Assembly: GCA_047495785.1 (NCBI GenBank) | Contig: JBLDXI010000004.1 | Span: 1,426,001-1,490,000 of the forward strand | Direction: 5' to 3' | From: Lepidodermella squamata | Lineage: Eukaryota; Animalia; Gastrotricha | DNA: 64,000 bases | Shown here: piece by piece, positions 11,036 through 55,991 of the stretch | Numbering within the stretch: position 1 is the stretch's first letter | How the letters are laid out: the number at the start of each line of letters is the position of its first letter | Position numbers and translations under genes: made by a program | Notes under the pieces: model-generated | What the model was told of the DNA's origin: nothing | What the model saw: only the letters and a program-made list of their open reading frames with translations | Database searches by the model: none

Positions 11036-14000
11036 CTAATGCGTGCCAGTCGTGAAAGCGGCGCAGTTGATTTCGACGATTCGCATTTCTTCAAAACTCA
11101 GAACCTTGTTGAACAAGTTCAGGCAAGCCAAACTGCCCAATAGCTGGTCTTGCTGGCCTGACCATGAGCTGTCAAATGGAAGTGAATGAACTATGCGTAG
11201 GAACTATAAAATGATATGCTGAAACTAACCGCCCTAGGCTGAATTCCCCGCTAGCCGTGAGAGGGCGCGAGCTTCCAACCAATACACCCTCCGTTTGGAT
11301 ATAGAACCGCAGCTCATTGTTGTTGGCATTGTACGTTATCGTCAGAAACTGCCATGCCATTGATGATGGTGCCTGGATCGATTGAGAATAAAAAGAACTA
11401 CCATACGGCCGAATTTGAAAGAATCCGCCACTTTTCTGTAGTTCAAGTCCTGGCATACCTCCATCTGGGGCGAATTCGAATATCGAGCCGATCGAGCCGT
11501 CTGGACTAGTGGCTAGTAGAGTGATGGTGAAACTGCCCGTGCTTAGCTTGACTTTATCAGCAACCACGGCTATTAGCTCGGTTGAATTGAAATAGAAGGC
11601 CGTGCTCGGTACGCCGAACGGTCCGGTGATTCGTGGAAGAGGCGTGTTTGGTGCCGTCGCATCGGCTCTGGACTCGACCACGTCATTGAAATCAGAAACC
11701 AGAGGCCATAGGGCAGTGTTCTCAGGTATGATAGCTCTTAAATTCTCAGGAGCCCAAGTTTGCCCAGCGTGGATTTGTAAGCATCGTCTTCGAAGTATCC
11801 ACAACTGCTGGATTGATAGGGCTTTGTTGTATATCGATAAGCAAGACGCAAAGAGCGGGGCTTCGGCGATGGAAATTGCCCCAATATTCATTTTAGTGCT
11901 AGTAACTGGCACCTCTCCGCTCACCGTGTAGGCGAGGTTGTCGCAAACTGCTGTCAGTTGATTGGATGCACGGTCGTAGATGACAGCAACAAAAATCCAA
12001 GCTGGGAATTGACTCAAAGTCGAACATTGAAATTGTTCGAACCCTGACTGGGAATCTGTGAAAACAATTTGGTGAACTCCTACAAAGGTTGGAATATTGC
12101 AAAAGAGCCAAAATTAGGACAAGTTTACCTTAGGGGGCATCCATAAAGGACGTCCGGCTTTCGAGGGGGGAGGGGGTCGACCAAAGTGTGACTCGCGACT
12201 GAGGGGGGAGGGGGGTCGGGCGAGGTCGGACACGCGACATTATCAAAAAATTTTATTTAGCAATGTGTTTTATTTAGCAGTCACACTCGACGGATTTGCA
12301 CCACCTGTTTCAATATCAAGTCAAAATTACCGTACTGCCCGAAAAAAAAGCCAGCCTCAAATAAATGGCAGCCTCAAATAAATGTCAGAGGTTAGAGGTC
12401 GTTCGAGATAATAAATGTCAGGCCCGAAATAAATGTCAGGTCAATTGCAGGGAATATACTGAAGATCACTAATGAGGTCATTATAGCCATTCTGAATGGA
12501 GATAATTTCTACTCTTGGCTTATAGAAAGGTCAGGGACCAATTTTTGGGTAAAAATACGTAGATTCTCAGGAAAATATATGCCATTTTGGTACCCAGGCA
12601 AGTTACTAGTTGGTTCGAATAAATAAATGTCAGGCCCGAAATAAATGTCAGTCCCTTTTAAATGTCAGGGGTTCATCAGCGTTTGAAAAAAACAAATGTC
12701 ATGGTTTTTGTTCCGGGCAGTACGGTAGCCAATTTTCACCACTACTTAGAACTGTAAGTAGTACGAGGACACTGTTAAGTCGGTTTTAATCGTGTTTAGC
12801 AGCGGTATCGTCCTCGTTATAACCCACGCTCATTAAATTTTAGGTCAGGTGCAAGCTGCTGCTATTGACAATTTCAAATTAGTTTAATTTTGACGTCCCT
12901 ATTATTGTCACTCATGGCGCCATTTTCCACCTAAAAGTTCGCGAGCGCCGTTCAACTCGATAGTAATTTACCGCCGTTCTCGGTCTAGCTACGCGGTTCT
13001 ACCTACACCTGAGCGTGTGTAACTTTGGGTCACACAATGAAAACAATGAAAAAGAACAAGCGAAAAATAGCGTATTTTTTGTCACAAACAGGGGGGGGGG
13101 GTGAACCAGTTTGTGACATGCGAAAGAAGGGGAGCTCGGTAGATGTGACATCAAGGGGGGGGAGGGGGGTTGAAAAATACCATTTTGAACCGGACGTCCT
13201 TTATGGATGCCCCCTTAGTATACAAACAACATTAAGACTACTTTCGAACCCTAGCGTAAACATGAGGTTACCCAAGGTCATAACTTGACCATCCACAGTC
13301 CGAACAATTTGGTTACAATTTGTATCGTGTTTAAAGCTTAGGTAACAAAGGACATGAGCAAGCTCCAAAAGTGTCTTGGATGATCGTCTTTAAATCAGAG
13401 CTTTCATGGCAATTTTCATAATTAGGCCACTCGCGATCGAAGCGAGCCTTAGCTGACGGTTTTTCCGATTTTGAGTCCGAGAAAATGGGCCGAAAATGCA
13501 TAATTTCTTAAAGCTAAACGCATATCTGCTCTTCAAATTTCAGGAGGATATGGCTGAGAGAAACGCTGAGAGGATATTCAGAGAAACGCTGGCTTACCCG
13601 TGAATATGAGAAGCGTGTTGTTGGAAGATGCGTAAAAAATGCGAAATAATAATGCATCATCGTAAAACACAATGATCGGCGATAGAACGGTAGTTGCGTG
13701 ATAGAAGCCAGCATAAATCGAAATTGTGAAAGACGATTGGCTGAGATCCAGTTTGCTACTCTTGATTACCAGATAGCCGGAAGAACCCCCTATAGCAAGC
13801 CCAGTTTTTTCGAATGCGAACGGGCCAGATAGGAAAAGAGTAGCAGCATACGCATTTATACCATTGACGCCATTCCCGCTAATATCGTTCAGGTCATAAG
13901 TACTAGTCAACGGTAAATAAGCCAAATCATTCGGCAGCCCAAAAGGCATCTCTGAAAATGACAGCCTATGATTTCAAGTGCGAACATGCGACCAACTCAC

Positions 14001-17000
14001 GTTGCTCGCATAACTCCAAGGCGCTGAACAATAAACCATTAGATACCTATGCGATCAGCGATCAGTTTACGATGACAGGAAGATTTAAAATGCTTCTCAC
14101 GTAATTTTCAGGGCAGCTCTTATCAGAGGAAACACATTGATATAGCATCAGCAGTTGATTCGTGCACAAGATGTACTGTATATAGAAAATCAAAACATCA
14201 TCGTTAAGGTTCAGCTTGAAAGCAAGTCTTATAAAATTGATAGATCAAGTAGTACATCTGTAACTCTGTTCTCATAAAATTGTAAAAATTTCAAGAATTT
14301 GCGAAAATTTGAATTATGCAAAGAACAAGTGTCGAAGTTGTGTGTTCTTCAATATGTTTGATTGTTAATTTGAAATTGTTTGATTGTTTGATAAATACCG
14401 AATTGGAAGGACATTATGCAGGGATATAACAGACCTAAATAATTACCGTATATTACCAGAATCCATCATTGCCTCTATAAAACCTACCACGAAGTTTTCA
14501 CTTACGAATGATGCTCTGCAGGTGGCATAATTTTCGGAATATGTCCCAGTGGCGAAAACAGTTGTCTGAAAATGCCGAACTTGATAACGAAAAATGTGAA
14601 CAACGACAAACCGTGAGCTCTCCTTGCGGGCAACTGGGCGAATCCTGGCATGTTCTCGCAACGGCGCATCGATAGGCACTCTGAAAGACTGGATAATAAA
14701 AATGACGCGTGAAAGTGATCATCCATACCGCATTATTGCATGCAATCTCAGACGTATAAGTGACGCCTCCAACCTAATGAAAACGTTGAAGCACAGCCAA
14801 GCAGCGCAACGCTTTAACTAACGGAAATTGATGGGCTGGTACAAGATTGGAAACAGCCAGTGTAGGATTTGTCGCCAGCGTTGTAACAATGCACGTGAAT
14901 GGTTGCTGGTAACATCAAAAAGTCAGAGTCAGCAATCGAGGTTGAATATCAAAGACAAACTTATTTTGCAGATTGCGAACGAGTCAAAGCTAGCACCATC
15001 CAGGCTTGTGGTCTGAAAAGTAAAAAGTAATATTATCCAAATCGGAATTCTGTTGAGAGAAACGTACAGTAGATACTGGGCAGTCCGCGCTGATTGGGAC
15101 GCATACAGCGAGCGTATTCGAGTTCGGCCGGAAGCAACGTTTATGCTTCCCCTTGAGTAAAATTAAGGAGCTTAAAATAATCCGTGACGTCGATGGAAAT
15201 TGTATACCTGAGTTGCAGCAAGGCAGGTTTGGAAGCTGTTAACAAACGCCGTAGAACTTGATCCGACGATTCCAACCTACAACATTTTTTAGTTTAACAT
15301 AAAACAAGGATAAGACTAATGCTAATGCGGGGCATCACGTCATATTTCCCGGCGCCGCTCGGGCACGATTCAAGGCAACTGCCACCGCTTGAAGCATCGT
15401 AACACATTCTGATAGGCTGATAGGAAACTTTTCAGTCATGGCTTGATAATTGATGAAATAAGACTAAACCCCTGTTTCGCAAGCAGTTTTCGTCGTGAAG
15501 ATCGTTAGGCTTTGGAACTGTTTTCGGAAATAAAATATTCAGATGTCAAATAAAAAATGGGATCCTACAACGGATTCATCGCATGGCATCGGAGCGGGCT
15601 TGCATCCAGAAAAGGTTGACCCAGTTGGACCAAAACAACGTCGATGAGGAAAATAGGACCTTGGGGCTGTAATAGACACGATTAGACTCTGAAATATTGA
15701 TGTTAATTCGTCAACGAGCCAGATTCGCATTCGCCAAGGTTGTTGAATGTGACGCCAGTCGAAAATTGGCTTGTGCTACCAGCCGGGCAGGTTTGAGAGC
15801 CATCAGAAGGGATGCATTTAACTAGTTTGTAGATTTGCATATTCAGGCAAAATCGATGAGGTTTCTAAACGATGCATTTATTTTCATGTTATCAGGTGAT
15901 GAAAGTACCATGTAATTCGCTAGATAACCCAGGCACTGAGCGTAATTCGACTCGAAATCGTTCATGTCGCTGAAAGTCGCCATCTGAAGAAGAGTAACGG
16001 ATACAGAATCGACAATGCAATTAAAATAGCTCACCAGACTCATTGGCGATCGGCAAATGCTGCGGCAAACGAAGGTCGATGTGGATTTGCATAGCGTAGC
16101 AGGCTTCGGGAATGTAAAAGGGAATGAGCTATTTTCCCTAAAAAAAACCTCATCAAAATACCCCAGCAGAGCAATGTTTCTTATCAATGTAGATTCCACC
16201 GCTAAAAATCTTGAAACGAAATGATTATACTCTCAAATGTCCAATGTCTGAAAGCACTGAACCTGTGTTTGTGTGGTCGCGTTACATCCCGGTGTAGCTA
16301 ATCGGCAGCCAGCGAATGAGCGATCCGAGTTTGAGAAACACCGAACATGAGGCGAGTAGTCTGAACTCCTGACGGCTAAATTAATTCAAAATAGGTAATA
16401 TGTTCAACCAAATTGCGAGTTTTGAATTTTGAATCTTGTTTAATTAACATTCACTGCAATTATCATTATCTTCAATTGTCAATATTTTCTTGGAAATTGT
16501 TGAGAAAATTAAATGGTAACCAAAATGTCATTCTTCAATTTTAATGGATAATCTCGCAGCCGTAAAACATTTTTTGAGCGTCCAATATTTCTTCGATTAT
16601 TATTATTTGAATTTCAGAGTCTTTCGATAATAACGATAACAGTTCCAGTTTAGTTTCGCTTTTCTACTATTAGGGTGTAGGAATTTTGAATGCTGAAATA
16701 TAGGCGCGATTTAACCGTTTGAATTTTAGACTTCGTGGACTCAAACTGAATGAGTTTGATACGAACCTTGAATTTGCCTCAAACACTCGTTCAAGCTGGA
16801 TATCAGGCCCGATTCGCGCTGACACGAAACAGAAAAATCATTAACAATGTAAATTGCTGGAAATCTCACCCAGCCTGGCGGGCAATTGCAGTCGATAGGC
16901 ACGCAAGACATCGTTGAATTGACCCAGCATTTTCTCGCTGGTTTTTCCTGTGGAGCATTAAGAGGAAAAAACCAAGAGAAAATGGCCAAAAATACCATGT

Positions 17001-17494
17001 AGGACCGAGTAATGTTAATGCAGGTAGCATAACGCGGTTCGAACTTAAAACCCACAAATTCTAGATGCTATGAAATAAATGAAAAAATAAGATAATAATT
17101 TAATTATCGAAAAATACCGGAATTTCGTCCTTCGAACAAGGCACGAATTTAGGCAGACATCTCAGCGTGAACTGCTTCGGGCTGAAACAGCTATGTAACA
17201 ACGCCGGCTGAAATAAGAAATAACGTCAAGATATGATGAGATTCTTCAAATCGACTTACACTTTTCTTACATCCCGCATAATCGGGATATGTTGGGCCAA
17301 GAAGCTTTTCGTGATAAATGTTTCAAAGCTTTTGGGTGTTGGGGCAGCATAAATCTCACCTGAGTTTCTTCGAATAGAGAGCAATCGCCTTTGCAATCTA
17401 TGAAATCGTCGTTCCATCGCGATATACATCGCTTGTAGCAGTCAACGCCGCTAAAAGCGAAGACTAAGATTAAACTGGCCGTTATTAAATTCAT
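11036..17494 (-). CDS. Paralog B1: signal peptide + 12 four-Cys repeats (4 triplets) + 2 LamG/pentraxin-like domains
   Basis: About 26 exons, from MNLITASLILVFAFSGVDCYKRCISRWND to ..CAAFTTGTH* at 11036. C-terminal exons have Laminin_G_3-like motifs (DISGNG, FTISIY/FTITLL, WQFLTITY, LRFYI, FSLG, GSLACLNLFNKVL). One donor (~15719) is GC. Confidence 0.8.
12133..13214. mobile_element. PIF/Harbinger-type MITE in B1 intron
   Basis: TIR GGGGGCATCCATAAAGGACGTCCGG; 3-bp TSD TTA. Confidence 0.85.
12330..12725. mobile_element. Tc1/mariner-type MITE nested in the PIF MITE
   Basis: TIR CCGTACTGCCCG flanked by TA; internal AAATAAATGTCAG repeats. Confidence 0.7.
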
Positions 17495-18739: not shown

Positions 18740-21174
18740 ACGCGTAACTCGCGCGGATCGGGACGCAGACAGCCAACGAATTTGTGTTGATATTAACACA
18801 GCGTTTATGCTTTCCCTGTAAATAAACGATATGAAAATAATCAGGGACAGTCATGCATTTTTTCTACGTTAATCGCAGCTAGGCAGGTTTGGAAATTGCT
18901 ATCAAGAGGAGTGCTGCTAGTTCCGACAAATCCCAGCTGTAAAATAACGGAAAACAATAATGAAGAATAGGCGTAAAAGTTGGATATTACGTAATATTTT
19001 CCGGCACGATTCAAGGCAGCTACCACCGTTCGAAGCATCATAACACATTCTGATAAACTGAAGCTTTTTTGACGCTTTTTTGTAGATGGTGAGATGTATA
19101 GAATAATGCCCAACCCCTGTTTCGCAAGCAGTTTTCGTCGCGAAGATCGTTTGGCTGGGGGTCTGTTTCACGAAAATACTCAAATTTAACTGGGAATTAT
19201 TAAAATAGAAGATCTAACATCAGTCCCGTCGCATGGCAACTGAGCAGTCCTGCATCCGGAGAATGTGGACCCGTTCGGACCAAAACAGCGGCGATGAGGG
19301 AAATAGGATTGCGAGGCTGTAAAAATCCCGAATAAACCCGAAATTTACAATATTTTTTAACCAACCATATTCGCAATCCCCACGGTTGGCGAATGTGACA
19401 CTGCTGGAAAATTGGCTAGTGCTACCAGCCGGACAGGTTTGTGTGCCATCAGTAGGGATGCACTTAACTAGAGCGTAGGTTTCCGAATTGAGGCAGGGTT
19501 GGTGAGGTTTCTAGACAGAAAGTTTCCCTAAAAACATTGATTGATCTTGACCATTTATTCAATTACCATATATGCCGCGAGATAGCTCAGGCATTGAGCG
19601 TAGTTCGTCCCAAAATCGTTCGCGTCGTTGAAAGTCGCCACCTGAAAAAGAGTAACGGTAACAAAATCGACTAGGGACATTGTGGGTGGTGTTTAGCATA
19701 GTGAACTCAGAGATGAAGATGTAGATTCCACTTACTGAAAGCCTGAAAACGAAATGATTGAACTCAAATACGAATGGTCCAACAACTATTGAACCTGTGT
19801 CAGCGTGGTATCGTTGCAACCCGGTGTAGCTAATCGGCAGCCAGCGAATGAGCGGCTCGGGGTCGAAAAACACCGAACATGAGGCGAGAAGTCTGAATTC
19901 CTGACGGCTGAAAAAATAAAAAGAAATAAACAATTCAGACGTCCAACGTTACTTAACCCCAATTCATCTCTCGATTTTGCTACTCGCATTCGATGCTTCA
20001 TGAGTTTCGAGTCACTATTTACTTTACGTTACAAGCATAAAACAATTCTGAACATGAAAGTCGATATTTTGGAGTGTCTGAGTACCGAATGTTGCAGCAT
20101 CGGATCGTTTAGCATTTTTGAGTTGATGTAATTAAATTCGATACTTAAGGCTAGATTCCCTAAATTAAATTTCAGATGTCGTCGTTTCAAGATTTTATAC
20201 AAACCTTTAATTTTTCTCAGGCACTTATTCAAGCTAGATATCGGACTCTGCCGCTGAAATAATGGGGAAAAATATGATTATTATTATTTATAAGTTATAG
20301 TCTCACCCAGCCAAGCGGACATGTGCTGTCAATGGGGACGCAAGTCATCGTCGAATTCATCGAACATTTCATCGCCGGATTTGCCAATAAAAGAGATAGT
20401 GAAATTAACATTTAAATGGAATCTTCAAATCGTAAATAGTACCATGTAGGGCTGAATTTGTTTGATGCAGTCATTGTAGCTCGGCCCCAGACGAAAATCA
20501 GTAGACCGAGAGCTCAGTAGATCGTACGTAGATCCAAAAGGCAAAATATTCGTCTGAAATAGCTGTTTTTCTGACCTATTGTCGATCTATTAGACTGGAT
20601 CTACGGGCATCAATCCTGTGTAGGTCCAAATTTTACCACTGGATCTATGTAGGGTCGAACCCATACGATCTATCCCAGTGTCAAATTTAGATCCACCCAT
20701 GGTCTACTTTTTTTCGACTGGGGCTTAAATGCCAAACCTGTGAAATCTCGGTGCTGTGAAAATCATTCGAAAAAAAATAAAATATATCCATGCTTTATTG
20801 AGGAAGGTACCGGAATTTCGTCATTCGAACAAGACGCGAATTGCGGCAGGCGAATTGCAAACGTGAACTGTTTAGTGTTATAACAGCTATGAGCCCACTG
20901 AGAATAGGTAATCGGTCAAACAGAAAAATAGTTTCGTTAAATCGACTTACGCCTTGCTTACAGCCTGCATAATCAGGAAATACTGGTCCAAGCTATTCGC
21001 GAGAATGAGTTTCAAAGCTGTAGAGCCAATTTTTACCTGAGTTTCTTCGAATAGAGAGCATTCGCCTTTGCAATCTATGAATTTGTCGTTCCATCGCGAT
21101 ATGCATCGCTTGTAGCAATTGCCGCCGCTAAAAGCCAATGCTAGGATTAAACTGGCTGTTAATTGTAAATTCAT
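18740..21174 (-). pseudogene. Paralog B2 pseudogene
   Basis: Exons homologous to B1 exons 1-16. Exon 4 is split by a MITE, exons 8-9 are largely deleted, exon 14 has a frameshifting deletion, exon 16 has indels, and no LamG exons follow. Confidence 0.8.
20486..20722. mobile_element. CCCAG-ended MITE (animal EnSpm/CACTA-like) inside B2 exon 4
   Basis: TIR CCCAG(A/T)CGAAAA..AGTAGACC; 2-bp TSD GC. Removing it restores HRDFTGLAFKPSYNDCIKQIQPYM. Confidence 0.75.
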
Positions 21175-22336: not shown

Positions 22337-25300
22337 TTAGTTGAGTTCATCGCCAAAAGATCTGTCGCACGCTATTTGGTACGTCTCCAAGTTGCAGTGT
22401 GCCATGTAGCCGGTACCTCCCTTGCCGAAAATACCTGGAAAAATGGCAAAAAGGTTAAAATCTGAACATAAGAAAAGCAAGGGATCTCAGCTGGTTAGGT
22501 TGCGATTAATCGTCAGTAAGTGCACTTTAATCCACTAGAGCAAACTAGAGCTTCAACTATAGCAGGACTTGAAACATGTTGGAATAAACCGAGAAACCGA
22601 CAATGTTCCACTCACACTGTTGGTTTGACGTAGTCCAGGGGAAAGATTCACCCGATCGCCAGTCGTGCAGGTGTAGAGGGTCAGCTCGAGCTTTCGCGTT
22701 GAGAAAAATGTTGCCCGCAGCTGGGAACTGCGCGGCGAGGCTCAGCATGGACGCCGAGTCGGCGGCGATCGGCAGCATCTTCAAGGCATCTTTGCACAAC
22801 GTATCCGCCTGAGTCCACGACTTGGCTGTACCACTGCTTTGCAACGTCACTACGCCCTGAAACGACGCGATAGATTTACTTTATAAAATATAAAATACAC
22901 TTGGCCAACACTTACCGAACTCGCATCAGCGCAATAGATGTTTGTCAGTGTGAATGTATCGCAGTCAACGTCATCGTAGCCATAAGACGATGCCGAGTCG
23001 ATGCGCAAAGCCACACCTGAAACCCAACAAAGATAAAATCATCAGCTATAGAGAATTCGAGTTTGGCAAAACTTGACTGGACGAAATCAGCTAAGATTAG
23101 CTACAACTTACAATCGCCGTCTCTGTTTGGTTCGCCTGGGAACCAGCTAACCGGCTGCAGTCCCCAGTCGAGAACCTGGCCGTCATCGAATGTGAATGAC
23201 TTGCCCCACGAGAGCCAGAAAGGCTGACCGGCAGCTAGTTCATTCACCACACTTTCCGCCGGGCTAAATTGGTATGACAGAGAGACCGGCTGCGCTCCTT
23301 GGGCCTGGCACGCCCGAATCGCCGCGACATAAGGCATTGGTTCGCCGGATGTGATGAACAACCGCACTTGGTTGGCGAAAATAATCGTTAATTAACTGCT
23401 TCGTGCTTCTAAAATTACCAGTTCCACACGTCGGTCCCATGTAGGCGAAAGTGCATGTGCAGACATTGGTTTCGAAACACGAACCGCCATTTTGGCACGG
23501 CGGATTGCAGGTTGCTGAAACAGTTGAAGCCTACTTATTCAAAGCATGCCATGATTAATGTTTTCAGTAATATTTTTATCGATTATTAGAAAGGGATCTG
23601 GAAGGACAACACTAAAATGAAACCTTAGTCTAGTGCGTCAAGTCTAGTCAGAGAGTGAATTCGGGCAGCGGAACTAGAATTCGGGCAGGGATTTACTGGA
23701 GTAGTAAACAATCTTCTGGTCGTGACGGGGCGGCTCTAAATTCTAAATTCTAAAAATGGCTAAAAATGGGCTTTTTTGTGGTCACAACGATATCCTGGCC
23801 AAATCTTAAAAATTGACAAGGGACCGCTTTTAAACGCTCTTCGATAGAAGTCAACCCTAATATAAACGGAAGGCAACTGCTAAATCGCATTTTTCGTAGT
23901 TCATCAATGAAGAATAAAGTTATGGCAAAAAATTATGGCGCATAGGCATAGTGTATCAAGCAAGTACCTGAAGGACGCTCGCACAGAGCCTTCAACGAAG
24001 TCGTACAGCTAACAGCGCACAGCGAACCATCCGGGGCCATTGCACCGCCTGTAGGATGGAATAAAATCATAGCACAAAAGAAGCTTGAAAAAGTCCGTCG
24101 CTCACATGATTTCGTGTCGCTGAAGGCTTTCACTCCGCCGATTCCATCTGGCAACGCGTCATTACTGCCGTACGGCTCTTTGTTCAGCCACGCGTAGTAC
24201 GGCGCAGTTCGGTCGCGTTTGAACCCACCCCACACCGCAATGTTGGCCACGTATTTGAATTGCAACAGATTAACAACTCGCGTGTACTCCATAGCATGCT
24301 TAATAGTCAACATGACCAAGCCTTTCGCCTCGCAAAACGATTTCGCCTGGTCAAAGCTGTTGCTCTGCGCGAACAGCTTCATTTTACGCTGCAAAACAGA
24401 TCAAGACATGAAAAATCTTCTCCTCGGCCGAAATCTCAGTTGGAAATAACCGTAGCTGCATCCTGGCAGACGATGTGGCTGACTTGGTCACTGCACGGGC
24501 GAAATTGCCACGTAATTGGGGTTTGAATGGTCGGCGAGCCGGCTAAATAAGGACCTAAAACAAAACCAATGCGATTCACATCTCAGGTCTAGTAGTAATG
24601 CCGACTTACAATCGCCTGAGCCTTCTGGTACCTTCATCGCAGGGTCGGGAAACGCCGGCAGCCCACTCATTATCGAGCTGTCATCGGAGACGAGGCGAAA
24701 CTTGGCTGTGAGGCCGATGTAAACGGATTCGCCAGCTGCGATTGCCTTCCCATCCGCAACGTCATCGGCTGTCGTCGGTTGCGCAAGCCGCCCGCCGTTA
24801 GCAAAGCAGTTGTAAGCCGACCACGAGTAATCAGCCGCGCTCGATACGAAATACTGCTTGACGGCTTCGCAAGCAGTTTTCGTCGCGAAGATCGTTTGGC
24901 CGGGTGTCTGTTATACAAAATTGGATTTTTATTATTCAACTGGGAAATAAGAACTCACATCAGTCCCGTCGCATGACAACTGAGCAGGCTTGCACCCGGA
25001 GAATGTGGACCTATTCAGACCATAACAGCGCCGATGGGGAAAATAGGATTTCGGGGCTGTAGAAATCCTGGATAGACTCAAATTTTAAAAATATTATAAA
25101 GTTCTCAACCAACCAGATTCGCATTCGCCAAGGTTGGCAAATGTGACGCCAGTCGAAAATTGACTTGTGCTACCAACCGGACAGGTTTGAGTTCCGTCAG
25201 TGGGGATGCATTTGACGAGAGTATAATGCAGTGAATTTAGGCAAAATTGATGCGGTTTCTGATGAAAAATGCGTTGCAACGGTAAAAATTGATATCAATA

Positions 25301-36435: not shown

Positions 36436-36461
36436 TTTTACAGATGATAGATTGCTCAAAC

Positions 36462-38960: not shown

Positions 38961-39067
38961 TCCGGGAAAAAAGAAAGTTAAATTTTCTTGTAGTCTAGAG
39001 TCTAGATGACATTATTTCTTAACATTTTCACGCTAGAATTTAATTTTGTTTAATTTTGCTCCTGCAG

Positions 39068-40970: not shown

Positions 40971-42542
40971 ATTAGATTGGACTTTTAAGTGGTCACACAA
41001 TGTTCCTGTTAGTTCAAAGCAGGACTTCTCTTGTAATTGAGACAACATTTTACAGGAAAAACATTTTTGTATTCCGAACCATCCAAGATCATGAGTTGTA
41101 GCTAGGACGCCGAACCTTGAATCCCGCCATACAAAGGTGCATGCTAGAATATTCTGAATACTTTTTGTAAAAATTTAATTTTCAGGGTTTACTAAAAATT
41201 ATCATTTCATTGAACCGTAAAAAAATTAAACCGTCGCTGGTTACGGAGCTAGAATCAGGTTCCGAAGCTCAAGGGTTTCAAAACATGAAATTTAGATCTC
41301 ATGTAGATAGCGAACGCAGGCAAATAGCAGCAGAAACATCCCGCATGGTTATTATTCCATTCGTCGCATTTACACTAGGCCGCACCCATGGTGCTAATTA
41401 TTCGGATTGTTTAACAATTTCCCCCCAAGAAAAGTAATGGACGTAGGGTGCGTTTCTTTATTACCAGCCATTTTTTATTTCAAAATTAAAATAAAACAGC
41501 GACATTTCTTTATTATTTTATATTTTAAAATAAAAAGAAATGTCATTTCTTTATTCGATTTTTTTTATTTTATTTTATAAAATAAAACGTCATTTCTTTA
41601 TCACATTTTTTTCATGATTTTAGAAAATAAAATGCGAATGAAACGACACGTGCTGTTTATAAACTACGCACCGATAAAGAAATTAAAAAAATGGTTTGAG
41701 CGTAGTTAGAAAGTATGAACGTTATCGCCCTAGGCCCATTAGGAGCATCCAAAAGAGCGTCCGGGGGAGGGGGGAGTGCCAATCTCGATTCTTCCAATCG
41801 ACGCATTACGCAAGTTTTAGGAAAGCTTAGTAGAACGTAGTTCAACGATGTCACATCAGCGGTGACGCTTGAGCAGGCGACACTCCAGCAACTGCCACTT
41901 CCGCAAAAGATTTGTAATAATATTTTTGGACAGTAGAAGTTTTCAACACTCGTCAATTTAAGGCTCCGAGACATTTCCGTCGATTGAGCTGAGCCAAGCG
42001 ACAAATTAGCCAGACATTCGCGACAACGGCAACTCTTATTCCAATTACACTTAATTATCAAGCGAAATAATTGAAATAAATTTAGCTGAGTTGTCGTTAT
42101 TATTCAAATATAATGGACTTTCAAAAAGCTATAGAGGTGGAGCTGGGCATGCTCGCTTAGCTCGCATAGCCAACTTTGTGTAGCAGAGCGAATTATCAAT
42201 TATCGATTGATCGCGGGAAATTTTAGCCTCAGTGTGCGACTTTTAGGGGGGATGGGGGATCAATACTTGCCAATACAAAGTCATTTTTGAACAATTATAC
42301 GAATTTCATGCGAATCGGGCACTCTGCCTCATAGGAAATGTTACGCTGAATTTACTGGTGATTTCTCTAGATTTCTTGCGGCCGATCTTGAACATATGGT
42401 TCCGCTGAAGCATATTTGGTTCCGGTTAAAGGAAGACACCTTTCCAAATTGCAGATTTTTTCTGCTTATATATAACGAAAAATCGCTTATTATTTTCACG
42501 TGAACGCTAGCATTCAATTACGTTTTATTTTGCCTTCTGCAG

Positions 42543-43033
42543 TCTGCTTATGTCCGCTGCGTTGACAAAAGAAACGCGTCAGTTCGATGCTTGCCCGACA
42601 CGGTTGGCTGCGATGCGAACACCGACGTTGGAATTCCGGCTGTTGGCACCTATCCGGACGAAGCCACCTGCAAGGGCCTGCGCAAAGTTTGCGATAAAAC
42701 GATTTTGGGCGAAGGCTACAATAAAAAAGACTGAGCACAGGCATGCATCAATCACGGCGATTAGTTAGCTCAAATTAGGACCAATGACGAACTGGCGATG
42801 GCTAGGTCAGCATTGCCGAGTGGCTGGAACACGTGGTCACTCAGCAAAACAACGTGTTAAAATGGGATCATGGCTCCGATTTCGAATATATTCCTGATCA
42901 GTGGCCTAACGCACCTGCTGATGGTTGCGTCATTTTGTCTTATGTCGAGCAAGGGAACGACCACTATTACTATTTTTCATTTGATTGTGATTGGACTGCT
43001 GACCAAGCTTTATGCGAGCGATTTGTGCTATGA
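42543..43033 (+). pseudogene. A-family terminal exon (repeat 6 + C-type lectin), copy 2
   Basis: Highly similar to 39068-40275. Has an extra TGA, the same TAG, and an internal deletion. Confidence 0.8.
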
Positions 43034-45169: not shown

Positions 45170-48100
45170 CTAGTGCTTGCCAATGGTGAAAGCGGCGCAA
45201 TTGATTTCGACGATTCGCATTTGGCTGACAGTCAGAGCGGTGTTGAATATGCTCAAACACGACATGCTACCGAGAAGTTGGTCTTGCGGGTTTGCCCATG
45301 ACCTATCGAGTGGAACATTATTTTCATGGCAAAAACAAGGTCAAACATGAACTAACCGTCCCAAGGTGAATGCCCCACCTTTTGTAATAGGTCTTGGGTT
45401 GCTCCCTATGACCAGAGGCTTCTTTTGAATATATAACGATAGTTCACCTCTGCCCACATCAGACATAATCGAAACAAACTGCCAGTCCAATGGCGCAGGG
45501 CGCGAGTAAAATGTTGTTTCTGTGCCGTATGGCCGTATACCAAAACCGCCAGCCACATTCGCTACGACTTTGAGTCCCGCCGTCGACGCATCAGGGGCAA
45601 ATTCGAATAGCGGCGTGTTCGCCAGAGCTGATTTCGAGGCTAGCAGAGTTATGGTAAAACTGCCCGTGCTCAGCTTGACCTTATCGGCAGCCACGGTTAT
45701 AGCATCGGTTGAATTGAAATAAAACGCCGTGTTAGGTACGCCGAACGGTCCGGTAACTCGCTGGAGAGGCGTGGCTGGGGGCGTGGCACTGGCTGTGGGT
45801 GCGACTACGTCATTGAAATCAGAAATCAGAGGCCAGAGAGCTGTGTTCGACGGCAGGATAGCTTTCAAGTTCTCCGGGGCCCAGGTTGTTCCGAAGTGAA
45901 TTTGCAGACACCGCTTTCGAACTATCCACAACTGCTCGATAGTTAGAGCTTTGTCGTAAATCGATAAGCAAGACACGCCACCATAGAGGGTGCCACTGCC
46001 GTCATCGAAGTCCTTGGCGAGTTTCATCTTGGTACTGGTTTCCGGCGGTGATACGGTTGCAGTGTAAGTCACGCTGTCGCAAACAGCTGTCAGTTTATTT
46101 GAGGTACTGTCGTAGATTGCAGCGATGAACACGTAAGACAGGGAAAGCCCATTTAGCGATGTACAGTTGACTTGAGTGAATGGACTTGCTGAGTCTTTAG
46201 AAAATCAAGTAATTCAGGCGGGTAAAGCTACATACAACCTGAAACCTCACCGATGGATATTCGCATCGAGTCAGTAAGAAAATCGTAGAATATCCTGAAG
46301 AGTGCTTTCGAATCATAAAACATGATAATTGGTTGTGGAGAGCTCTGATATGTCCCAAAACAAGCGTAGAGAGAAATGGTAAAAGATGACTGGCTCAAAC
46401 TGAGCTTGCTACTTTGAACGTGTAGATAGCTTGCGGTGGTTATTAGCAGAGAATCTGGGGTACCGAAAGGACCATTCCAGAATGAAGCAGAGCCTCCAAT
46501 CACAGTTCCGTTGACGTTATTTCCGCTGATATCGCTTGTACTGTAGGTACTCGTTAGCGGGAAAAATGCCAAATTTCTTGGTAGACCGAATGGGCTCTCT
46601 GGAAAAATGCAACAGATAGCTTCCACATGTGAAACTTAACATTTTGATAATCTCACGTTGCTCGCATAATGCCAATGTACCAAAAGACAAACCAGTCGAA
46701 ACCTTTTATGCGGATTAATTCCATTACAAATGCTTTGGAGGCATAAAACATAATGCTCACGTAATTTAGAGAACAGCTGTTGGCAACGGGCACACATTCG
46801 GCTTTCATCAGCAGCTGATTTGTGCACAAGGCGTACTTGATGTAGGGAATACAAATGTGCATTTAGTAAGAAAGCTTTTTGACCAAAAAACCGCAGGCCT
46901 AGCTAATTTTGCCTAATTCGTAATTCGAAATTTCTCAAATTTATCCTGCAGCCAGTAGCCAGCATCCGCTAAGATAATATGTACGAGGTTATCTAATACA
47001 ATTCCATCTAATCTAATACAATCTAATACAATCTAATACAATCTAATACAATCTAATACAATTCCATATTTGTTCCATATTTTGTTCCATACTTGAGAAC
47101 TATTTCAAGGTGCTGGCTAAAGGGCAAACGAAATGGGACTGTCTTATTCTCGAAATGCTCTACATTCGTAAGCTTAAGCATTGTGCGAAGTAGGTTCCGG
47201 GAGCTGAGCTGTTTTCTAGGACCCAGCCGAAGAAATCAAAGGGTCCTCCCTGTGGGTTTCTCAGCCTTCCCCTGGTTCGAGTCCCGGAGCTGCGGTGTCG
47301 CGACAACCCAGCACCCCTGTACTTCGCACTTCGCTAAAGCCTAATTTCAACAAACAAAACGACTCATGACTGAAGTTACGCTAACCGAAAATAAGAACGC
47401 TATTGACCACAAGAAAAATGGGAAAGCCCCGGGGATCGACGAAATACGACCTGAAAAAATTAAAGCACTAAGCGACACGAATATTGAATGGCTCAGCGAG
47501 ATCCTAAATCAAGCCTGGATAAAAAGGGGGTCCCTGAAGAATGGTCAACTGCTATAATTACCCCTTCTATGATGAGGAACTAAATTATAGGATTTCCAAG
47601 GCAAGAAGTGTTTTCGGAGCCATGAATAAATTCATGTGCAATAAAAATCAGGTGTCTATTGCTAAGTTGAAAGTTCTGACCTGCGTTATTAGTTCACATG
47701 ACTACGACGAGGAAGGACTAATTAACAAAATTTATATTTGGACGCCTCCGTTGGGTTGGTTTACACTTAGAGGACGACCCCAAACTAGATGGATCCACGG
47801 AGTGCATAGAAGTTTGATCAAAGTAGGACTGGCTAAGGAATTGCGCCGGAAAAAGGAAACTAGCTCTAAGAATAAAGCCAAGGATAAGAACGGCAAAACG
47901 CCAAAGAACAGGGAAAAACCCGGCGAAACGGAGTTTGAGAGTAAAATTATACCTGATATTCAACTAGCTGAAATGGTATCTTTTGAAAAAGATGAATGGC
48001 GCAAGATTGTTAACTCGATTGAAAACTAGGTATTTTTCGGAAAAGCAGAATCTTCAACTGTGGGGGTGGGTGAGGATTTATTTTTGCCTGCGCGCCCTCT

Positions 48101-51100
48101 TCAAAACCGGAAACGGCAAAGACGCTTCAGTCAAGAATAGGTTTGAATAAAACTATTATTATATATTATATTATTATTATTATAAAACGACTCAATCAAA
48201 GCTTAGCTATTGATGGAGCCGATATTCCATGAGAGGTGTAAAAGAAGATGGAAAACTAGCCAGATTACAATTTCAAGATGCTTGAGATGGTTCTTCTGGG
48301 CGTCATGGCTCTTTAAATAAATAAATAAATAAACCTTAAAACATCCACCTCAATTCTTAACTTCACTTCAAATTTCGATTTAATTTCTTATACAATCCCT
48401 GAAGATGGTTATTAAGTATAACCGAAACGTTGGCATAGTGACGCCGAACTGCGTCGCAAGGTAAAATCGAACAATAGAGTAGCCTGCGGGAATAGGTCTT
48501 ACAGGCTGAATATCCAAAGATTTTGTATCCAAAGATGGTTTGGTAAATGGGGACAGTAGGCGAAAAATGAGCCGGTTTTGCTACAAGAACAGCGAGCTTT
48601 AATTTTCAGATTTTTCTTGAGACGCAATTTCGGCGTCCATTGGGAAAAAACGCGTTACGTTTTATGAACAAGATTTATTCGAAGAAACTTGTAATACGAA
48701 ATGTTATATTATATTACATCGTAAAATATCTAATTTGCATAGGTACTCGACCCATATTTTTAAGGTCATTTCTTTCTCTACGATTTTTAATGACTAATTT
48801 GATGAAAATGATGAAATCGACACCGTGCTACGATGACAATATTCGCTAAAGTTAAAATGACGTTAAGAGGACTTACAGCTGCTCTGCAGGCGGCGTAATT
48901 ATCGGAAAATGTCCCATTTGCGTAAACAACTGCCTATAACACGCAATTTCCTAATTTAAAATAAAAATTTGAGGATACTGGTCATACCGAAGGCTGTCCT
49001 TGCGTGCAACTTGGCGAATCTTGGCAACTTTGTCCGCAGAGATAGGCACTCTGAAAAAAAGCAAAAAATTTGAAAATGATACGTATTAAAGAACAGCCTC
49101 ACCGCAGTATTGCAAGCACTTTCAGACGTGTAGCTGACATTTCCAATCTATAATGGAACTTTTTGAAAGCAACGCAAAATCATAACTCGCATCAACTTAC
49201 GGCGGTGGATGGGCTCGAGCAAGACGGGAAGCAGCCATTGTATGATTTATCGCCAGCGTTGTAACAGTGCACGTAATTGACAACTGATTGATATGAAATG
49301 TTCATCGACTGAGATTATCCATCAAATCTATTTAAACCAACTTTTGCAAATCGCAAACGAGTCATAGGTGGCACCATCTTGGCTTGCGGCCTGGAAAAAA
49401 GAGTGTTGCAAAAATCAGAATCCCGCTGAGGTAAACTCACAGTGGACGTAGGGCAATTCGAGCTGATCGGGATGCAGACAGCGAGCAGATTTGTCTTTGG
49501 ATCGACGCAGCGTTTATGTTTCCCCTGAATCTAGCTAATTATAACCAGCAAAATCGCTGAACATCTCTTAATCACCTGAATCGCAGCAATACAGGCTTGG
49601 AAGTTGTCACCAAACGGCGTAGTGCTTGATCCGACAACTCCACCCTGTAATATTAAAGATTGAACTCAAAAATCAAATTTTAAGACTGAAGTAGGGTATC
49701 ACATCGTATTTCCCGGTACCGCTCGGGCACGAATCCAGGCAGCTACCACCGTTCGAAGCATCATAACACATGTTGACGGACTGATAGAAAAATAGTTCAC
49801 TGTATGGTATTATAATTGGTGGAATAACACTCAACCCCTGTTTCGCAAACAGGTTTCGAGGCGAAGATAGTTTGGCTGGGTGTCTGTTAAACGCAAATCG
49901 ATCAAGGCATGGAATCATTGAAAAAAGATCTCACATCTGTCCCGTCGCATGGCAACTGAGCAGGCTTGCATCCGGAGAACGTGGTACCGGTCGGACCAAA
50001 GCAGCGCCGATGGGGGAAATAGGACTGTGGGGCTGTGAAAATCTCAGATAGACTCAATAATTGTATTCCAAATGTTGTAACCGACCCGATTCGCATTCGC
50101 CAAGGTCGTTGAATGTGACGCCAGGTGAGAGGGCTCTCGTACTACCAGCCGGGCAGGTTTCACTTCCGTCAGTAAGGATGCACTTAACCAGAGCGTAGGT
50201 TTGTGAATTCAGGCAAAATTTGTGTGGTTTCTAGATAATTTGTTTCATCAAAAATGATTATTAACCATTAATTAAAGTACCGTATATGCCGCGAGATACC
50301 TCAGGCATTGAGCGTAATTCGCCCCGAAATCGGTTGCGGCATTGAAGGTCGCAACCTGAAAAGAGAAAATAAGGCATTTTCGATATTGAAACGATTTCAA
50401 CCCAATAAAGGAAGCTCACCAGACTCATGGGCGATCGGCAAATGCTACGGCAAACGAATGAAGATGCGGATTTGCAGAATGCTGCCGGCTTTAGAAAAAC
50501 GAAGAAAGTTAAATTAATCATTATGCTTATTCGAAAAATAACCTACCCCTGTAGAGCAATGTTTCTTGTCGATGTAGATTCCACCACTGGGAGCCTGCAA
50601 CAGAAATTGAGATATAAGATTGAGATGAACTGGAAGGGGGTAAAGGGGGTAAACAAACCCCCCTGGCGTTCGAAACTTTCTGAAGAACGTAAGTGTCCTC
50701 TCATTTGTTTGCAAATTTTGGGCTGAAAATGGCTCGATTGACCCTCCTCAGAGCTGGGTCACTGTTGAGATGCCGAATTTTTCAAAAGATTCACTGTACC
50801 TGTGTTTGCGCGGTAGCGTTACAGCCCGGCGAAGCCAATCGACAACCAGCAAAAGCAAATGAACTATCCGAATTAGAGAAACACCGAACATGAGGCGAGA
50901 AGTCTGGACTTCTGACGGCTAATATCAATAAATATTTAATCATCAGCGTGAAGTAATTATACGCTTCGATACAAACCTTGAATCTGTCCCAAGCACTCAG
51001 TCAAGCTGAAAATCGGGGTCGATTCACGCTGCAATAAATGAGAAGATGAATGATGTCGAGTGAAACTAATTTGAAGTTTACCCAGCCAGGCGGGCAATTG

Positions 51101-52360
51101 CAGTCGATAGGCACACAAGTCACCGCAGAATTGTTCGTGCACTTTTTCGCCGGGTTTTCCTATAGGTAAAGCAGAATAAAAAATAGTTTAAAGCATAGAC
51201 AACACTTTAACAGATAGGAAGAAAACTATCTTTCCATAGTGAATTTATTCGAGCTGAATTTGCAAAGAGTGCGGCATGAGACCACTGTTTTGATCACCCA
51301 TCCGCCCATAATAATTTTAAATAATTAAAAAATTAAAAAATCAGCAGATACCTTTTTCGAACATTTGGATTTTCTGCTCATAAATAAGCTCATAAGCAGC
51401 CCTCAATCTAATGATACCAGGTACACCTGGCGGTCCCTTATGGATTAGTTTCTAGCATTCGCTAAAAAGGGCTATATTGCGTGATTCTGTGCATAATAGC
51501 CATTCTTCTGCCATGGTAGGCTCGTCCGGTAATTTTTAAAAAATTTGAAAAAATTGGTTTATCCATGTTGAGTATTTTCTTTATCCGGCAATATAAAATT
51601 TGTCCATTAATTAATTAAAAAATTAAAATTAAAATTAATTAGCAAGGCCGAAAATAATTAATAATTTTAATTTTCCGATTATTTTCGGCCTTCCTACATA
51701 TGGACTTTGACTTCTCTCAAAGCGTTGCTTGTTATAGGGAAATTCTTAGAAATGATAATTTTGGAGCCCAGAAAAACTCGAAATAAATTATTTACCCTAC
51801 AAATTATATATCGCCAGATAAAGAAAATGGTTTAGAGGAACATGTTTTAAAAGAAATTGACCATGTATGGCCGAATAGCATTGATGCAGTCGTCGTAACG
51901 CGGCTTGAACGTCAGGCCCGTGAAATTGAGATGCTGCGGAAAATAATTGGTAAATAATACTTTGAGCATGATTAATTTAACCAAAAATTACCGGAATTTC
52001 ATCCTTCGAACACGCCACGGCTCGAGACAAGCATCTCAGGGTGAACTGCTTCACGTTGTAACAGCTACGGGCTGACTGAAATCAGAGCGATGGCGAAATG
52101 TTGACCAAAACGGTCGAAATCTACTTACGCCGTCCTTGCATGACGCAAAATCAGCAAACGTCGAGCCAAGCTGGATGCGAGAAATTTGTTATAGATCAGG
52201 GTTGATTGTTGATTGTATATCCAACCTGATTTTCTTCGAATACAGAGCAATCGTCTTTGCAGGCGATGAATTCATCGTTCCATCGGGATATGCATCGCTT
52301 GTAGCAGTCACCGAAGCGAAAAGCGATGACGAGTAGTAAATAGACTGTTAAAAAATTCAT
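45170..52360 (-). CDS. Paralog B4: signal peptide + 12 four-Cys repeats + 2 LamG/pentraxin-like domains (appears intact)
   Basis: Exon-for-exon homolog of B1, from MNFLTVYLLLVIAFRFGDCYKRCISRWND to ..CAAFTIGKH*. I found no stops in the exons I translated. Confidence 0.82.
46991..47062. repeat. (ATCTAATACA)n 10-bp tandem repeat
   Basis: About 6 copies. Confidence 0.9.
47366..48183 (+). mobile_element. Internally deleted RTE-like LINE remnant in B4 intron
   Basis: KNGKAPGIDEI, RISKARSVFGAM, RGRPQTRWI, KDEWRKIV; AATAAA and (ATT)n tail. Confidence 0.8.
48395..48436 (+). ncRNA. Minimal type-I hammerhead ribozyme motif (Penelope-like element remnant)
   Basis: CTGAAGA-t-GGTTAT-taagt-ATAACC-GAAA-CGTTGG: both core boxes and a perfect 6-bp stem II. 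Confidence 0.6.
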
Positions 52361-53757: not shown

Positions 53758-53808
53758 TTCATGCATACGTCTCACATAACACGGTGTTATGTGAGACGTA
53801 TGCATGAA
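53758..53808. repeat. Perfect hairpin
   Basis: TTCATGCATACGTCTCACATAACAC-g-GTGTTATGTGAGACGTATGCATGAA. Confidence 0.9.
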
Positions 53809-55991
53809 TCTAGCAAGCTTTTTGATCTCCACCAAGAAGCAAGAAACGAGGGCTATTAGTTTTTACCTGCTATTTTTGAGTAGCATACCTTAGATTAGTG
53901 CCCGTTTTGTACACAATAAAACAAGAAAATGTGCAAAAAAAAAGCAAGAAACGAGGTTTTCCTGATTAATTGTTTCGAAAGGATTAGGCTCACTTGGAAG
54001 GTGGTATGACTTTGGTTGGCGCAAAATAATGATCACTGAATCCTCCAAATGCCGCCCTGTCGCGATGAGATACGGAATATGTTTATTAAAACCAGGCGTT
54101 CTGATCTAGGTATTTGTTTAAAACGGAGAGAAACAAATTACTTTTACCTCTAAAAGAACGCTTTATTCTCAGGAAACATCTAATTTGACTTTAGCAGTAG
54201 TTATTGCTGTAATGCCCATCGCGTATCATCAAATCGAACTTCAGGAAGCGAAAAAGAGAATACATTTTTTCTTGAACCAAACACAGCCTCAAAGCTCATA
54301 ACAGGAAGCGAAAATCAACGTTACAAATACAGTGTGTCCGTCAAATAATATGAGGCTATTTATAGTCCAAAAGCAACAGCAAGCGTGGCGCGTGCCAGAT
54401 CTGGCGTCTCATTTTTTTCATAAGATGCAAAAAATAATACGTCAATGAAATCGAAAGCTTTATTTACTACTGCTAGTTAAAATTTGTATGCATCAGCTAG
54501 TGTTGATGATTAAACTTTCTTCGTCTTAATTCTTTCAGGTGATAGAGAAGGTGATGTTCTGACCATCAGGAATGCTAATATTTTCCTCTTAACGAGCCGC
54601 GCCTTTAAAAATTATCTTAATTATCAGGTTCATCTCCGTCATCACCATCTTCTCCCTGAGCCGTTTCAGTTTTTTGTTTTGCAAGGGCCATTTTGAATTC
54701 GGCCATGGCCAGTTTTACAAACCGCTTTTTTGGAATCGGGTTTCCCCTTTTTCGCGTACATCGACTTGCCCATCGACTTGGGTCTTCAACAGCCGCGGGA
54801 CATTTTCTAAATTTTTTCGTAATCTTACATGTCTAATTTAATAACTGCCGTTGAAGCATAAAATGCAACAAAAGCAACAAATGCAACAAATGCAATGAAA
54901 GCAACTAAAGCAGTTTCCATTACGACCTGGTAATCTGTTTGAAATGAGTTCCGCGTTTTGAAATAAAGGGGTAATGTCGCTTTCGCCAATTTGTGTAGCA
55001 TCCGGGCGCTATCGGCTAACCGTTATATACGTGAATTTCACATACCCGCAAGAATACGTCCAATGGCTAGTACAAACAGTTTTAACTGAATTGGATAAGA
55101 AAATTTGCTATTTAAATGGTTATATTTTTTCCAGATATTAGGTTGACATTGTTGCGCGTTTGATCTTATTGCATGAATATTCAGGGCAACTCGTTGTCCC
55201 CAAAACTTTAGCAATGTACAAAGCTTGCAGGTGAAAATCCCGAAGCTAATGCTTTCGTTCCGAAGAATGTTCTTTATCTTGATTAAATAATACAAATTTT
55301 GGCGGAGCAATAATTGATATTTTTCCAGCAATGAACAACAATAGCTGTACTATCATTCAGTGCTGCGTTTTTTTTGCCTCGTGCACGACTCGTGAACAGG
55401 CGCAATCAAAATGCTATATATAGGCTCATATTATTTGACGGACACACTGTAATAATAAAACTCGCATACTGCGATTCGATATTTCGAATCGTTACTGCAA
55501 TCATCGTCACTCATCAAAAAAGCAGAACCAGAGTAAGAAACGATCCCACATCGATTAGGATTCGGCGTATAACCAGGCATGAATAAAGTTGGATCATACG
55601 TGAAAGCCGAACCGTCCGCCCATTTTTGGACGCCGGACTGTGCTGGAGGCAGACCAATCCATGCCGTTTCTGTTTGCTGTAATTGGCCGTTCAGCTGGGC
55701 TGCTTCGCTAGCGGATTTAATTGATCCCATGATCCCCATATCCCAACATATATCGGCAGCATCCGTATAATTCCAAGTGCGATACGTGTTTTTACCGAGA
55801 TATAAAAACTTTTTAGCATTTTCACAATTCGATTTGCTGGCAAATTCTTGGCTAATAGGAATGCGCTTCTCCGAGTTGGCGTCACATCCAACAGTGCTTG
55901 GCCTGCAGGTTACTGAACCGTCAGCAGGTCGCAGGCATCGATGGTAAGTGATCTATCAGAATCAAAATTCAATTCAAAATTAGGATTGAAG

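Follow-up and report, generated by a model that had tools for sequence, protein, structure and literature searches.

A cluster of about seven related genes and gene remnants is found in a 64,000-nucleotide (nt) stretch of the genome of the gastrotrich Lepidodermella squamata (GCA_047495785.1, contig JBLDXI010000004.1, positions 1,426,001-1,490,000 of the forward strand; this whole stretch is called the window, and all coordinates are counted within it). The cluster probably constitutes a tandemly duplicated, lineage-specific family of predicted secreted modular proteins with swapped lectin-fold heads, in which an N-terminal stalk of cysteine-containing repeats carries either C-type lectin-like domains (CTLDs) or Laminin_G_3-like (LamG_3-like) domains at its C-terminal end. 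The domain swapping in the cluster is real and lineage-specific, and the exchange of heads on a homologous stalk is supported by the collinearity of the stalks and by one junction at which the same repeat unit continues in two different ways.

A gene cluster built on a four-cysteine unit

The window consists of eukaryotic DNA in which GC makes up about 42%, introns are short and retroelements have been inserted at several places. A three-cysteine motif, described with an ad hoc profile, recurs in it, every time within short open frames, and the frames that bear it cluster as gene-like runs on the minus strand, except for one run on the plus strand. A further profile, built from 24 aligned three-cysteine units, matched the window 28 times at i-E ≤ 1e-4 and each of 10 shuffled versions of it not once; most of the 28 matches are members of the training set and six are independent of it. 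Comparison of the window with itself showed that the runs are paralogues with about 66-81% nucleotide identity, introns included.

The repeat of the stalk is 45-50 residues long and holds four cysteines, three in an "a" part with the pattern C-x10-C-x6-C, often with P-H-x-R in front, and one in a "b" part of 14-28 residues, where it follows an aromatic-rich stretch. The cysteine spacing over the whole unit is C-x10-C-x6-C-x15-27-C. In most units the two parts lie on separate exons, b usually on a micro-exon of 42-75 nt, with introns of 44-62 nt; in one unit of the B type and one of the A type, both parts occupy a single exon. The cysteine triplet repeat of the original prediction is real, as the matches absent from the shuffles show, but the true repeat is the four-cysteine a+b pair. 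Gene models were built by hand from paralogue alignments and include three minus-strand genes with intact open reading frames (ORFs), B4, B1 and B3, and a fourth model, A4, with two blemishes:

45170..52360, minus strand: B4, 24 exons, 971 residues, stop codon TAG; signal peptide, 11 a+b units and two Laminin_G_3-like domains (hand model)
11036..17494, minus strand: B1, 24 exons, 982 residues, layout like that of B4 (hand model)
22337..27165, minus strand: B3, 13 exons, 670 residues, open, GT-AG at all junctions (hand model)
55431..63883, minus strand: A4, 8 exons, 405 residues; signal peptide with a, then a, b, a, b, a+b, a and the last exon (hand model)

Pseudogenes and truncated copies make up the rest (B2, A3 and A1), and three or four of the about seven copies look functional. 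B1 and B4 have 11 units each, A4 about six and B3 three. Every gene starts with its own ATG and signal-peptide exon, and for this reason the alternative splicing of one stalk to several heads was rejected. The family would have grown by tandem gene duplication together with internal duplication of unit exons, mostly of phase 0.

The b micro-exons are easily overlooked. In the paralogue alignment of four B copies, "intron 9" holds a 48-nt block much better conserved than its surroundings, with AACAG directly before it and GTTGAG directly after it; the block is of phase 0-0, codes for a 16-residue segment with one cysteine and is a conserved micro-exon in B1, B2 and B4. Each "intron" of about 150 nt, as well as one longer intron, conceals a one-cysteine micro-exon of 42-69 nt, and seven b micro-exons are concealed in this way. 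They are coding, because their identity between B1 and B4 is 75.6%, against 51% for the flanking short introns, and their ratio of nonsynonymous to synonymous substitution rates (dN/dS) is 0.40. Once they are added, both phase anomalies are gone, each 150-nt "intron" becomes two introns of about 50 nt, and the stalk cysteine count is even. The 17-exon models of B1 and B4 that lacked them were replaced; these had relied on weak donors at one splice junction and on a GAG acceptor elsewhere, and counted 39 stalk cysteines. Two other candidates were discarded: the conserved piece of intron 9 in B1, B2 and B4 is not a relic of a CTLD exon, being a phase 0-0 b micro-exon, and a chitin-binding peritrophin-A domain, suggested by the loosely similar spacing of three-cysteine unit pairs, was dropped, since the unit is a four-cysteine a+b pair with no Pfam signal. 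For annotation this gene structure is a warning: half of each repeat lies in micro-exons between introns of about 50 nt, and gene finders skip such micro-exons, which results in odd cysteine counts and phase errors.

One unit was modelled with AlphaFold2:

56728..56886, minus strand: A4 a+b unit on one exon, 53 residues, four cysteines; the folded unit (AlphaFold2)

With a 24-row paralogue alignment (23 paralogous units), its mean predicted local distance difference test score (pLDDT) was 82.9, and in a separate run the a-unit adjoining the A4 CTLD reached about 80. The model consists of a beta-hairpin with the first and second cysteines, two short strands and a C-terminal helix with the fourth cysteine. 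From this secondary structure we infer that each unit would hold two disulfides, C1-C2 and C3-C4. Pfam gave nothing credible for three stalk ORFs at E ≤ 1, the best chance-level matches being the Frizzled membrane region (E 0.036) and hEGF (E 0.39). Foldseek found no significant neighbour of the unit fold in the PDB (best E 1.4) or in the AlphaFold DB clusters (best E 2.6), the wide VIA search of the PDB reached at best a generic MbtH-like fold with Z 4.4, and the ESM Atlas returned only bacterial MbtH-like matches by shape and a best value of 0.61, with low recognition (1660), by features. The stalk unit matches no described domain in the libraries searched (Pfam, PDB, AlphaFold DB and ESM Atlas), and the proposal of a new stalk domain is borne out to that extent.

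The Laminin_G_3-like heads of B1 and B4

The exons of the two longest genes are arranged as follows:

52360-46657, minus strand: B4 stalk exons, signal peptide and 11 four-cysteine units
46598-46251, 46194-45357 and 45302-45170, minus strand: B4 head exons, two Laminin_G_3-like domains
17494-14001, minus strand: B1 stalk exons (hand model)
13951-13598, 12079-11230 and 11168-11036, minus strand: B1 head exons (hand model)

B4 has GT-AG at all junctions and is the sole model without a blemish. Introns of 44-62 nt account for 20 of the 23 in B4, where these 20 measure 50-58 nt, and for 19 of the 23 in B1. In both genes an intron of 49-58 nt separates the last b micro-exon, which has a phase-1 end, from the first LamG exon, whose canonical CAG acceptor matches that end. 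Beyond the GT, some donors of B1 and B4 are weak (GTTGGT, GTCGGT, GTTCAG), and micro-exons of 42-52 nt are common; GC donors occur twice in this small family.

The 282-residue exon of B1 and B4 spans the boundary between the two head domains: it contains the final part of the first and the greater part of the second. A phmmer search with this exon against 1.84 billion representative sequences retrieved 11 proteins at E ≤ 1e-3 (best E 8.2e-10), and all eight of those scanned carry between one and four Laminin_G_3 domains. With hhalign the exon falls on the C-terminal half of the LamG_3 domain (E 2.7e-5, 74.6% probability), the end motif Y-N-x-A-L-S being covered, and the end-of-domain motif (Y/F-N/D-x-x-L-S/T) occurs twice in B4, marking two tandem domains. 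ESM features assigned the exon to PF13385 at 0.98, with at least 89 of 100 matches in PF13385 clusters. Pfam did not detect PF13385 on the B1 and B4 head exons, its sole match being SO2946-like_C with 18.3 bits against a cut-off of 27; the scores are low because introns split each domain. Sequence and profile searches of the PDB with the LamG exon returned nothing relevant, and no animal homologue of the heads was detected among the 1.84 billion representatives. The pentraxin (PF00354) signature H-x-C-x-S/T-W-x-S/T is absent from B1 and B4, and Pentaxin appears only as a weak secondary match in some of the LamG_3 relatives. Judged from these sequence comparisons, the B1 and B4 heads are two tandem, very divergent LamG_3-like jelly rolls; of the two "LamG/pentraxin-like" domains first described, the number and the LamG part are upheld while the pentraxin part is not.

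The B1 and B4 proteins are 63% identical (first, micro-exon-free models). Their dN/dS is 0.24 in the a exons, 0.26-0.40 in the b exons and 0.24 in the head, at a synonymous divergence (dS) of 0.7-1.5, so the two genes have long been under purifying selection, which prevailed during most of their separate history, and not under diversification. The original prediction had named dN/dS as a check on a recognition system; the value of about 0.24 in stalk and head alike does not favour diversifying selection.

The CTLD heads of B3 and A4

B3 is organized as follows:

27165-27028, minus strand: signal peptide and a part (model)
26810..26917, minus strand: broken a-unit exon, with TAA at 26810, two codons past the third cysteine, and no compatible donor
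25566-25492, minus strand: b part (model)
25258-25114, minus strand: a+b unit (model)
25056-24959, minus strand: a part, the last one common to the B pattern
24610..24907, minus strand: b-unit (16 codons) fused in frame to CTLD1 (ORF; four-paralogue alignment)
24554-24451, minus strand: exon after the b+CTLD1 exon (model)
24388-24106 and 24048-23968, minus strand: CTLD2 (Lectin_C 18.5 bits, E 0.0036)
23514-23419, minus strand: EGF domain (EGF_2 E 3.2e-4, 21.4 bits against a cut-off of 22.1)
23366-23112 and 23016-22916, minus strand: CTLD3 (model)
22856-22616 and 22434-22337, minus strand: CTLD4 (model)

The head is open for 560 residues over nine exons, with introns mostly of about 51-62 nt. 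A phase-1 intron divides every one of the CTLDs behind the conserved G-D-C position, and they end with the pattern C-x(5-8)-[IVLA]-[VYA]-C-[QEAD]; the EGF exon has six cysteines and is of phase 1-1. The calcium- and sugar-binding motif E-P-N is kept in CTLD3 only, where it is followed by Y-D-D in place of W-N-D. The sharing of B exons followed by a CTL-CTL-EGF-CTL-CTL head is thus reproduced, the former through the a-unit at 25056-24959 and the latter in an open GT-AG model, with the correction that no B exons are present in B3 between its first a-unit and the broken a-exon, and that this broken exon has to be skipped. Over 24018-24311, about 45% of the depth in a sequencing run (X1) belongs to a variant that differs by nine substitutions, grouped in the CTLD2 exons and close to them; it represents a divergent allele or else a paralogue that is nearly identical. 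Insertions of 7 nt and 3 nt are located in the intron at 23044-23068.

In A4 the stalk and the head meet within one exon:

55431..55952, minus strand: last exon of A4, an a part, a b part and a complete CTLD in an uninterrupted 173-codon ORF (ORF, Pfam, PDB phmmer, ESM features)

The top five matches of this exon in a phmmer search of PDB sequences are all C-type lectin folds (E 0.003-0.23), Lectin_C is present in 91 of 100 ESM feature matches (best 0.94), and the protein has the W-I-G-L motif at residue 330 and the C...C / C...C...C framework. The Pfam search with the whole 173-residue exon gave no match, and the b-unit profile found no b partner for the seventh exon. That A3 and A4 end in one CTL holds for A4, with its CTLD in the last exon; A3 is dead, owing to insertions, missing exons and an in-frame TAG.

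A proposed point of head exchange in the stalk

The A4 stalk is collinear with the first 290 residues or so of B1 and B4 (micro-exon-free models), with 31% identity, 20 of the 21 A4 cysteines aligned and a BLAST E of 1e-19. The "same" stalk originally reported is therefore homologous and collinear, although the A and B stalks are paralogues only 31% identical. The a-unit at which the alignment stops is also the last one before B3 departs from the B pattern. The b-unit that follows is homologous in all of them: I-P-I-S-Q-E-F-A-S-K-S-N-C-E in A4, T-P-G-Q-T-I-F-A-T-K-T-A-C-E in B3 and T-P-S-Q-T-I-F-A-S-K-P-V-C-E in B4. In A4 and B3 it runs in frame into a CTLD on one exon, whereas in B1, B2 and B4 it reaches a splice donor after two further codons and is followed by five more units and two LamG-like domains. 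With blastn, the nucleotide homology of B3 to B1, B2 and B4 ends at 24866, inside the b+CTLD1 exon. Past the junction A4 and B3 are still alike (C-E-N-A-K-K-F and C-E-A-V-K-Q-Y-F, respectively), and hence the b-CTLD junction would probably be ancestral and the LamG-type tail a derived replacement, the direction of the change being deduced from this likeness. We propose that the heads were exchanged at one point, just past the b-unit following the sixth a-unit.

If the models are right, an unrecognised disulfide-rich repeat serves this animal as the building block of secreted lectin-like proteins, and one head exchange is recorded at base-pair resolution, the same b-unit leading either into a CTLD or to a splice donor and a LamG-type tail. 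The cluster opens no long-standing question; invertebrates commonly have modular lectin families and cysteine repeats that are specific to a lineage.

Two half-units on the plus strand, at 28799-28852 and 53566-53610, resemble the first a-unit of the A-type genes (F-Q-x-C-F-S-x-Y-x-x-x-F-T-R-C). Both are on the strand opposite to B3 and B4, at 1.2-1.6 kb upstream of the start codons of these genes, which suggests that the duplicated block was once a head-to-head pair of an A and a B gene.

Observations that weigh against a family with swapped heads

Several observations count against the interpretation given above. Three of the four models have defects. B1 has a single GC donor, on the a+b exon 15864-15720. 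In A4, exon 56666-56595 also has a GC donor, and the expected first b micro-exon (about 63671-63631) measures 41 nt, one short of the frame, so that A4 is open only if it is skipped. In B3 the broken exon is out of phase with exon 1 and its inclusion leads to a premature stop; the gene is intact solely when this exon is skipped, giving signal peptide-(a+b)x3-head, 670 residues with 38 cysteines. The splice junctions in general rest on the gene models, the reads placed on the locus being short DNA-like contigs only. The A4 CTLD lies just below the Pfam cut-off (Lectin_C, PF00059, 22.4 bits against 22.6, E 2e-4), and in AlphaFold2 it is poorly modelled, with pLDDT about 30 and top Foldseek matches that are CTLDs at E ≥ 0.5; because of this poor model, its fold is supported by sequence only. 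Its calcium and sugar site is degenerate, with T-P-N and S-D in place of the canonical E-P-N and N-D (positions judged from the PDB alignment). Lectin activity is not implied for such a site; EPN or QPD, together with WND, define activity and not fold. The searches with the stalk unit covered the contiguous sequence of the window, the multi-unit spliced stalk being outside their scope, and a known domain spanning several spliced units could have been missed. Finally, no whole-protein homologues were found by phmmer with the LamG exon against the 1.84 billion representatives or by a word-based search with the last exon of A4, and nothing is therefore transferable from characterised relatives.

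Possible function and alternative explanations

In the B and A4 proteins the only membrane- or signal-like hydrophobic window is the N-terminal signal peptide; the top-scoring internal hydrophobic window of B4 is rich in cysteine, proline and serine. Given the signal peptides, the lack of a convincing membrane segment and C-termini that do not look hydrophobic when the sequences are read, the proteins are most likely secreted, as the original prediction held when it reported no transmembrane segment and proposed secreted modular proteins. The stalk would then be a disulfide-stiffened spacer or an oligomerisation arm that carries the C-terminal lectin-fold head, and the heads, either CTLD or Laminin_G_3-like, may bind glycans or other extracellular ligands, candidates at the sequence level being microbial glycans, matrix components and gamete coats alike. 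This architecture points to a soluble agglutinin, a pattern-recognition protein or a matrix-binding role. The purifying selection and the degenerate sugar sites argue against the picture of a rapidly diversifying immune lectin.

These same two features would fit another explanation, to which we assign a lower but appreciable likelihood: that the proteins are structural components of matrix, cuticle, mucus or adhesive and not soluble lectins, the cysteine-rich rod being load-bearing or cross-linking and the LamG or CTLD ends docking matrix partners. LamG and CTLD domains commonly mediate protein-protein contacts in matrices, and the odd total of 53 cysteines in B4 would allow intermolecular cross-links. 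However, collagen, mucin-like, VWD and other typical matrix modules are missing, and B3 CTLD3 keeps its E-P-N; at the sequence level the matrix and the lectin readings are not told apart.

A close architectural parallel to a family with exchanged lectin-fold heads is the VIgL family (FREP/CREP/GREP) of Biomphalaria, in which a shared N-terminal module is joined to an alternative C-terminal fibrinogen-related, C-type lectin or galectin domain (PMC5433772). Both are multigene families of secreted proteins (here predicted) with a shared N-terminal module and alternative C-terminal lectin domains. Whereas the VIgL module consists of one or two N-terminal immunoglobulin superfamily (IgSF) domains, that of the cluster is the four-cysteine repeat: Pfam found no Ig match on any stalk ORF, and the modelled unit is a 53-residue hairpin-plus-helix, not an Ig sandwich. 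The cluster also has no fibrinogen or galectin head, having a LamG_3-like head instead, and no sign of diversifying selection. The analogy with FREP/CREP/GREP proteins is thus one of architecture and not of membership.

Other known systems share single features with the cluster. The cysteine framework in the A4 head and in the four B3 CTLDs, the W-I-G-L of A4, and the phase-1 introns of the B3 CTLDs with the phase 1-1 EGF exon between them are shared with invertebrate multi-CTLD proteins, but in comparison with known PF00059 proteins the domains are very divergent, have mostly lost the calcium and sugar motifs and are fused to an undescribed stalk. Proteins with tandem Laminin_G_3 domains (PF13385, concanavalin A-like lectin/glucanase superfamily) are the only detectable relatives of the B1 and B4 head; they are about 30% identical to it, come from environmental or genome assemblies, and none has the cysteine-repeat stalk; the clusters closest to the head in the ESM Atlas come from bacteria or phages. 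EGF, TNFR-type and furin-like rods are likewise made of small disulfide-stabilised beta-hairpin units arranged head-to-tail, often one per symmetric exon, in extracellular stalks, but their cysteine number and spacing differ from those of the cluster unit, which has no Pfam, feature or fold match with them. A broader proposal, which we regard as speculative and rather improbable, is that the a+b unit is an undescribed extracellular scaffold domain of this animal lineage, which the genome encodes in pairs of micro-exons and employs throughout as an exchangeable stalk for various binding heads, the cluster being one arm of a head-swapping recognition repertoire comparable in its logic to the VIgL lectins.

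It is very improbable that the stalk-head joins are annotation artefacts, produced by separate adjacent genes or by mis-assembly. The contigs assembled by Logan from run X1 are short, about 250-540 nt. This run contains 88-100% of the words of the locus at a depth that is even over introns and exons, and it is therefore DNA, probably from the assembly's own sample. None of its contigs extends 31 nt beyond 24866 in both directions, 218 + 30 nt being the longest reach; yet contig 24648-24895 crosses the B3 junction without mismatch, with 30 nt on one side, and the depth there is like that of the flanks. X1 shows no sign of mis-assembly at the B3 junction, nor does it prove the junction independently. 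Moreover, the a+b+CTLD of A4 and the b+CTLD1 of B3 each lie within one exon and ORF, the phase-1 end of the last b micro-exon of B1 and B4 matches the acceptor of the first LamG exon, and no head is preceded by a start codon or signal peptide.

The notion that the whole cluster is decaying, with B1, B3, B4 and A4 recently inactivated, draws on the at least three dead copies (B2, A3 with its duplicate, and A1), the GC donors of B1 and A4, the frameshifted A4 micro-exon and the broken B3 exon, but it can hardly be reconciled with the 24 exons and 971 codons of B4 without a defect, the low dN/dS of B1 and B4 at their high dS, the open B3 head and the B4 head words in a second run (X2). The latter, from 2015, labelled as probable RNA and bearing a different organism label, contains 31% of the sampled words of the B4 head exons (45170-46596), a hint of expression.

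Inactive copies and neighbouring elements

The dead or truncated copies are the following:

18741..21174, minus strand: B2, truncated B-type pseudogene (paralogue alignment)
30527..40272, plus strand: A3, A-type pseudogene, exons 1-5 at 30527-31323
42504..43030, plus strand: tandem second copy of the last a-unit and CTLD of A3, with the same TAG, a further stop and a frameshift
8786..10006, minus strand: A1, A-type copy with exons 1-7 and an intact 42-nt b micro-exon, lacking the last a+b+CTLD exon

B2 has lost the second cysteine of unit 2, and one of its b exons has gained about 230 bp by insertion while one of its a exons has lost 11 bp; its homology stops after the unit at 18741. In A3, exon 5 is followed by a GC-rich retroelement (about 31.3-36.5 kb), units 6-7 are missing, and a 690-bp insertion stands between the last a-unit (39071-39157) and the CTLD (to 40272); the in-frame TAG at 39982-39984 is common to the tandem copy at 42.5-43.1 kb. 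No CTLD exon was found for A1.

The retroelement in A3 (about 31300-36500, minus strand) has 54-64% GC, against 42% for the genome, and reverse transcriptase-like ORFs of up to 490 residues in several frames. An apparently intact non-LTR retrotransposon occupies 58641-63068 on the plus strand, in intron 3 of A4 and antisense to it; its ORF1 codes for 381 residues with C-x2-C-x4-H-x4-C knuckles and its ORF2 for an endonuclease/reverse transcriptase of 1087 residues. Two related retroelement tail fragments, ending in ...D-E-W-R-K-I-V..., are located at 28151-28675 and 47541-48029 on the plus strand, the second within the 2-kb intron of B4. The plus strand at 1063-6559 codes for a trypsin-like serine protease that has two sushi-like segments, and after it, on the same strand, comes an ankyrin-repeat ORF of 388 residues.

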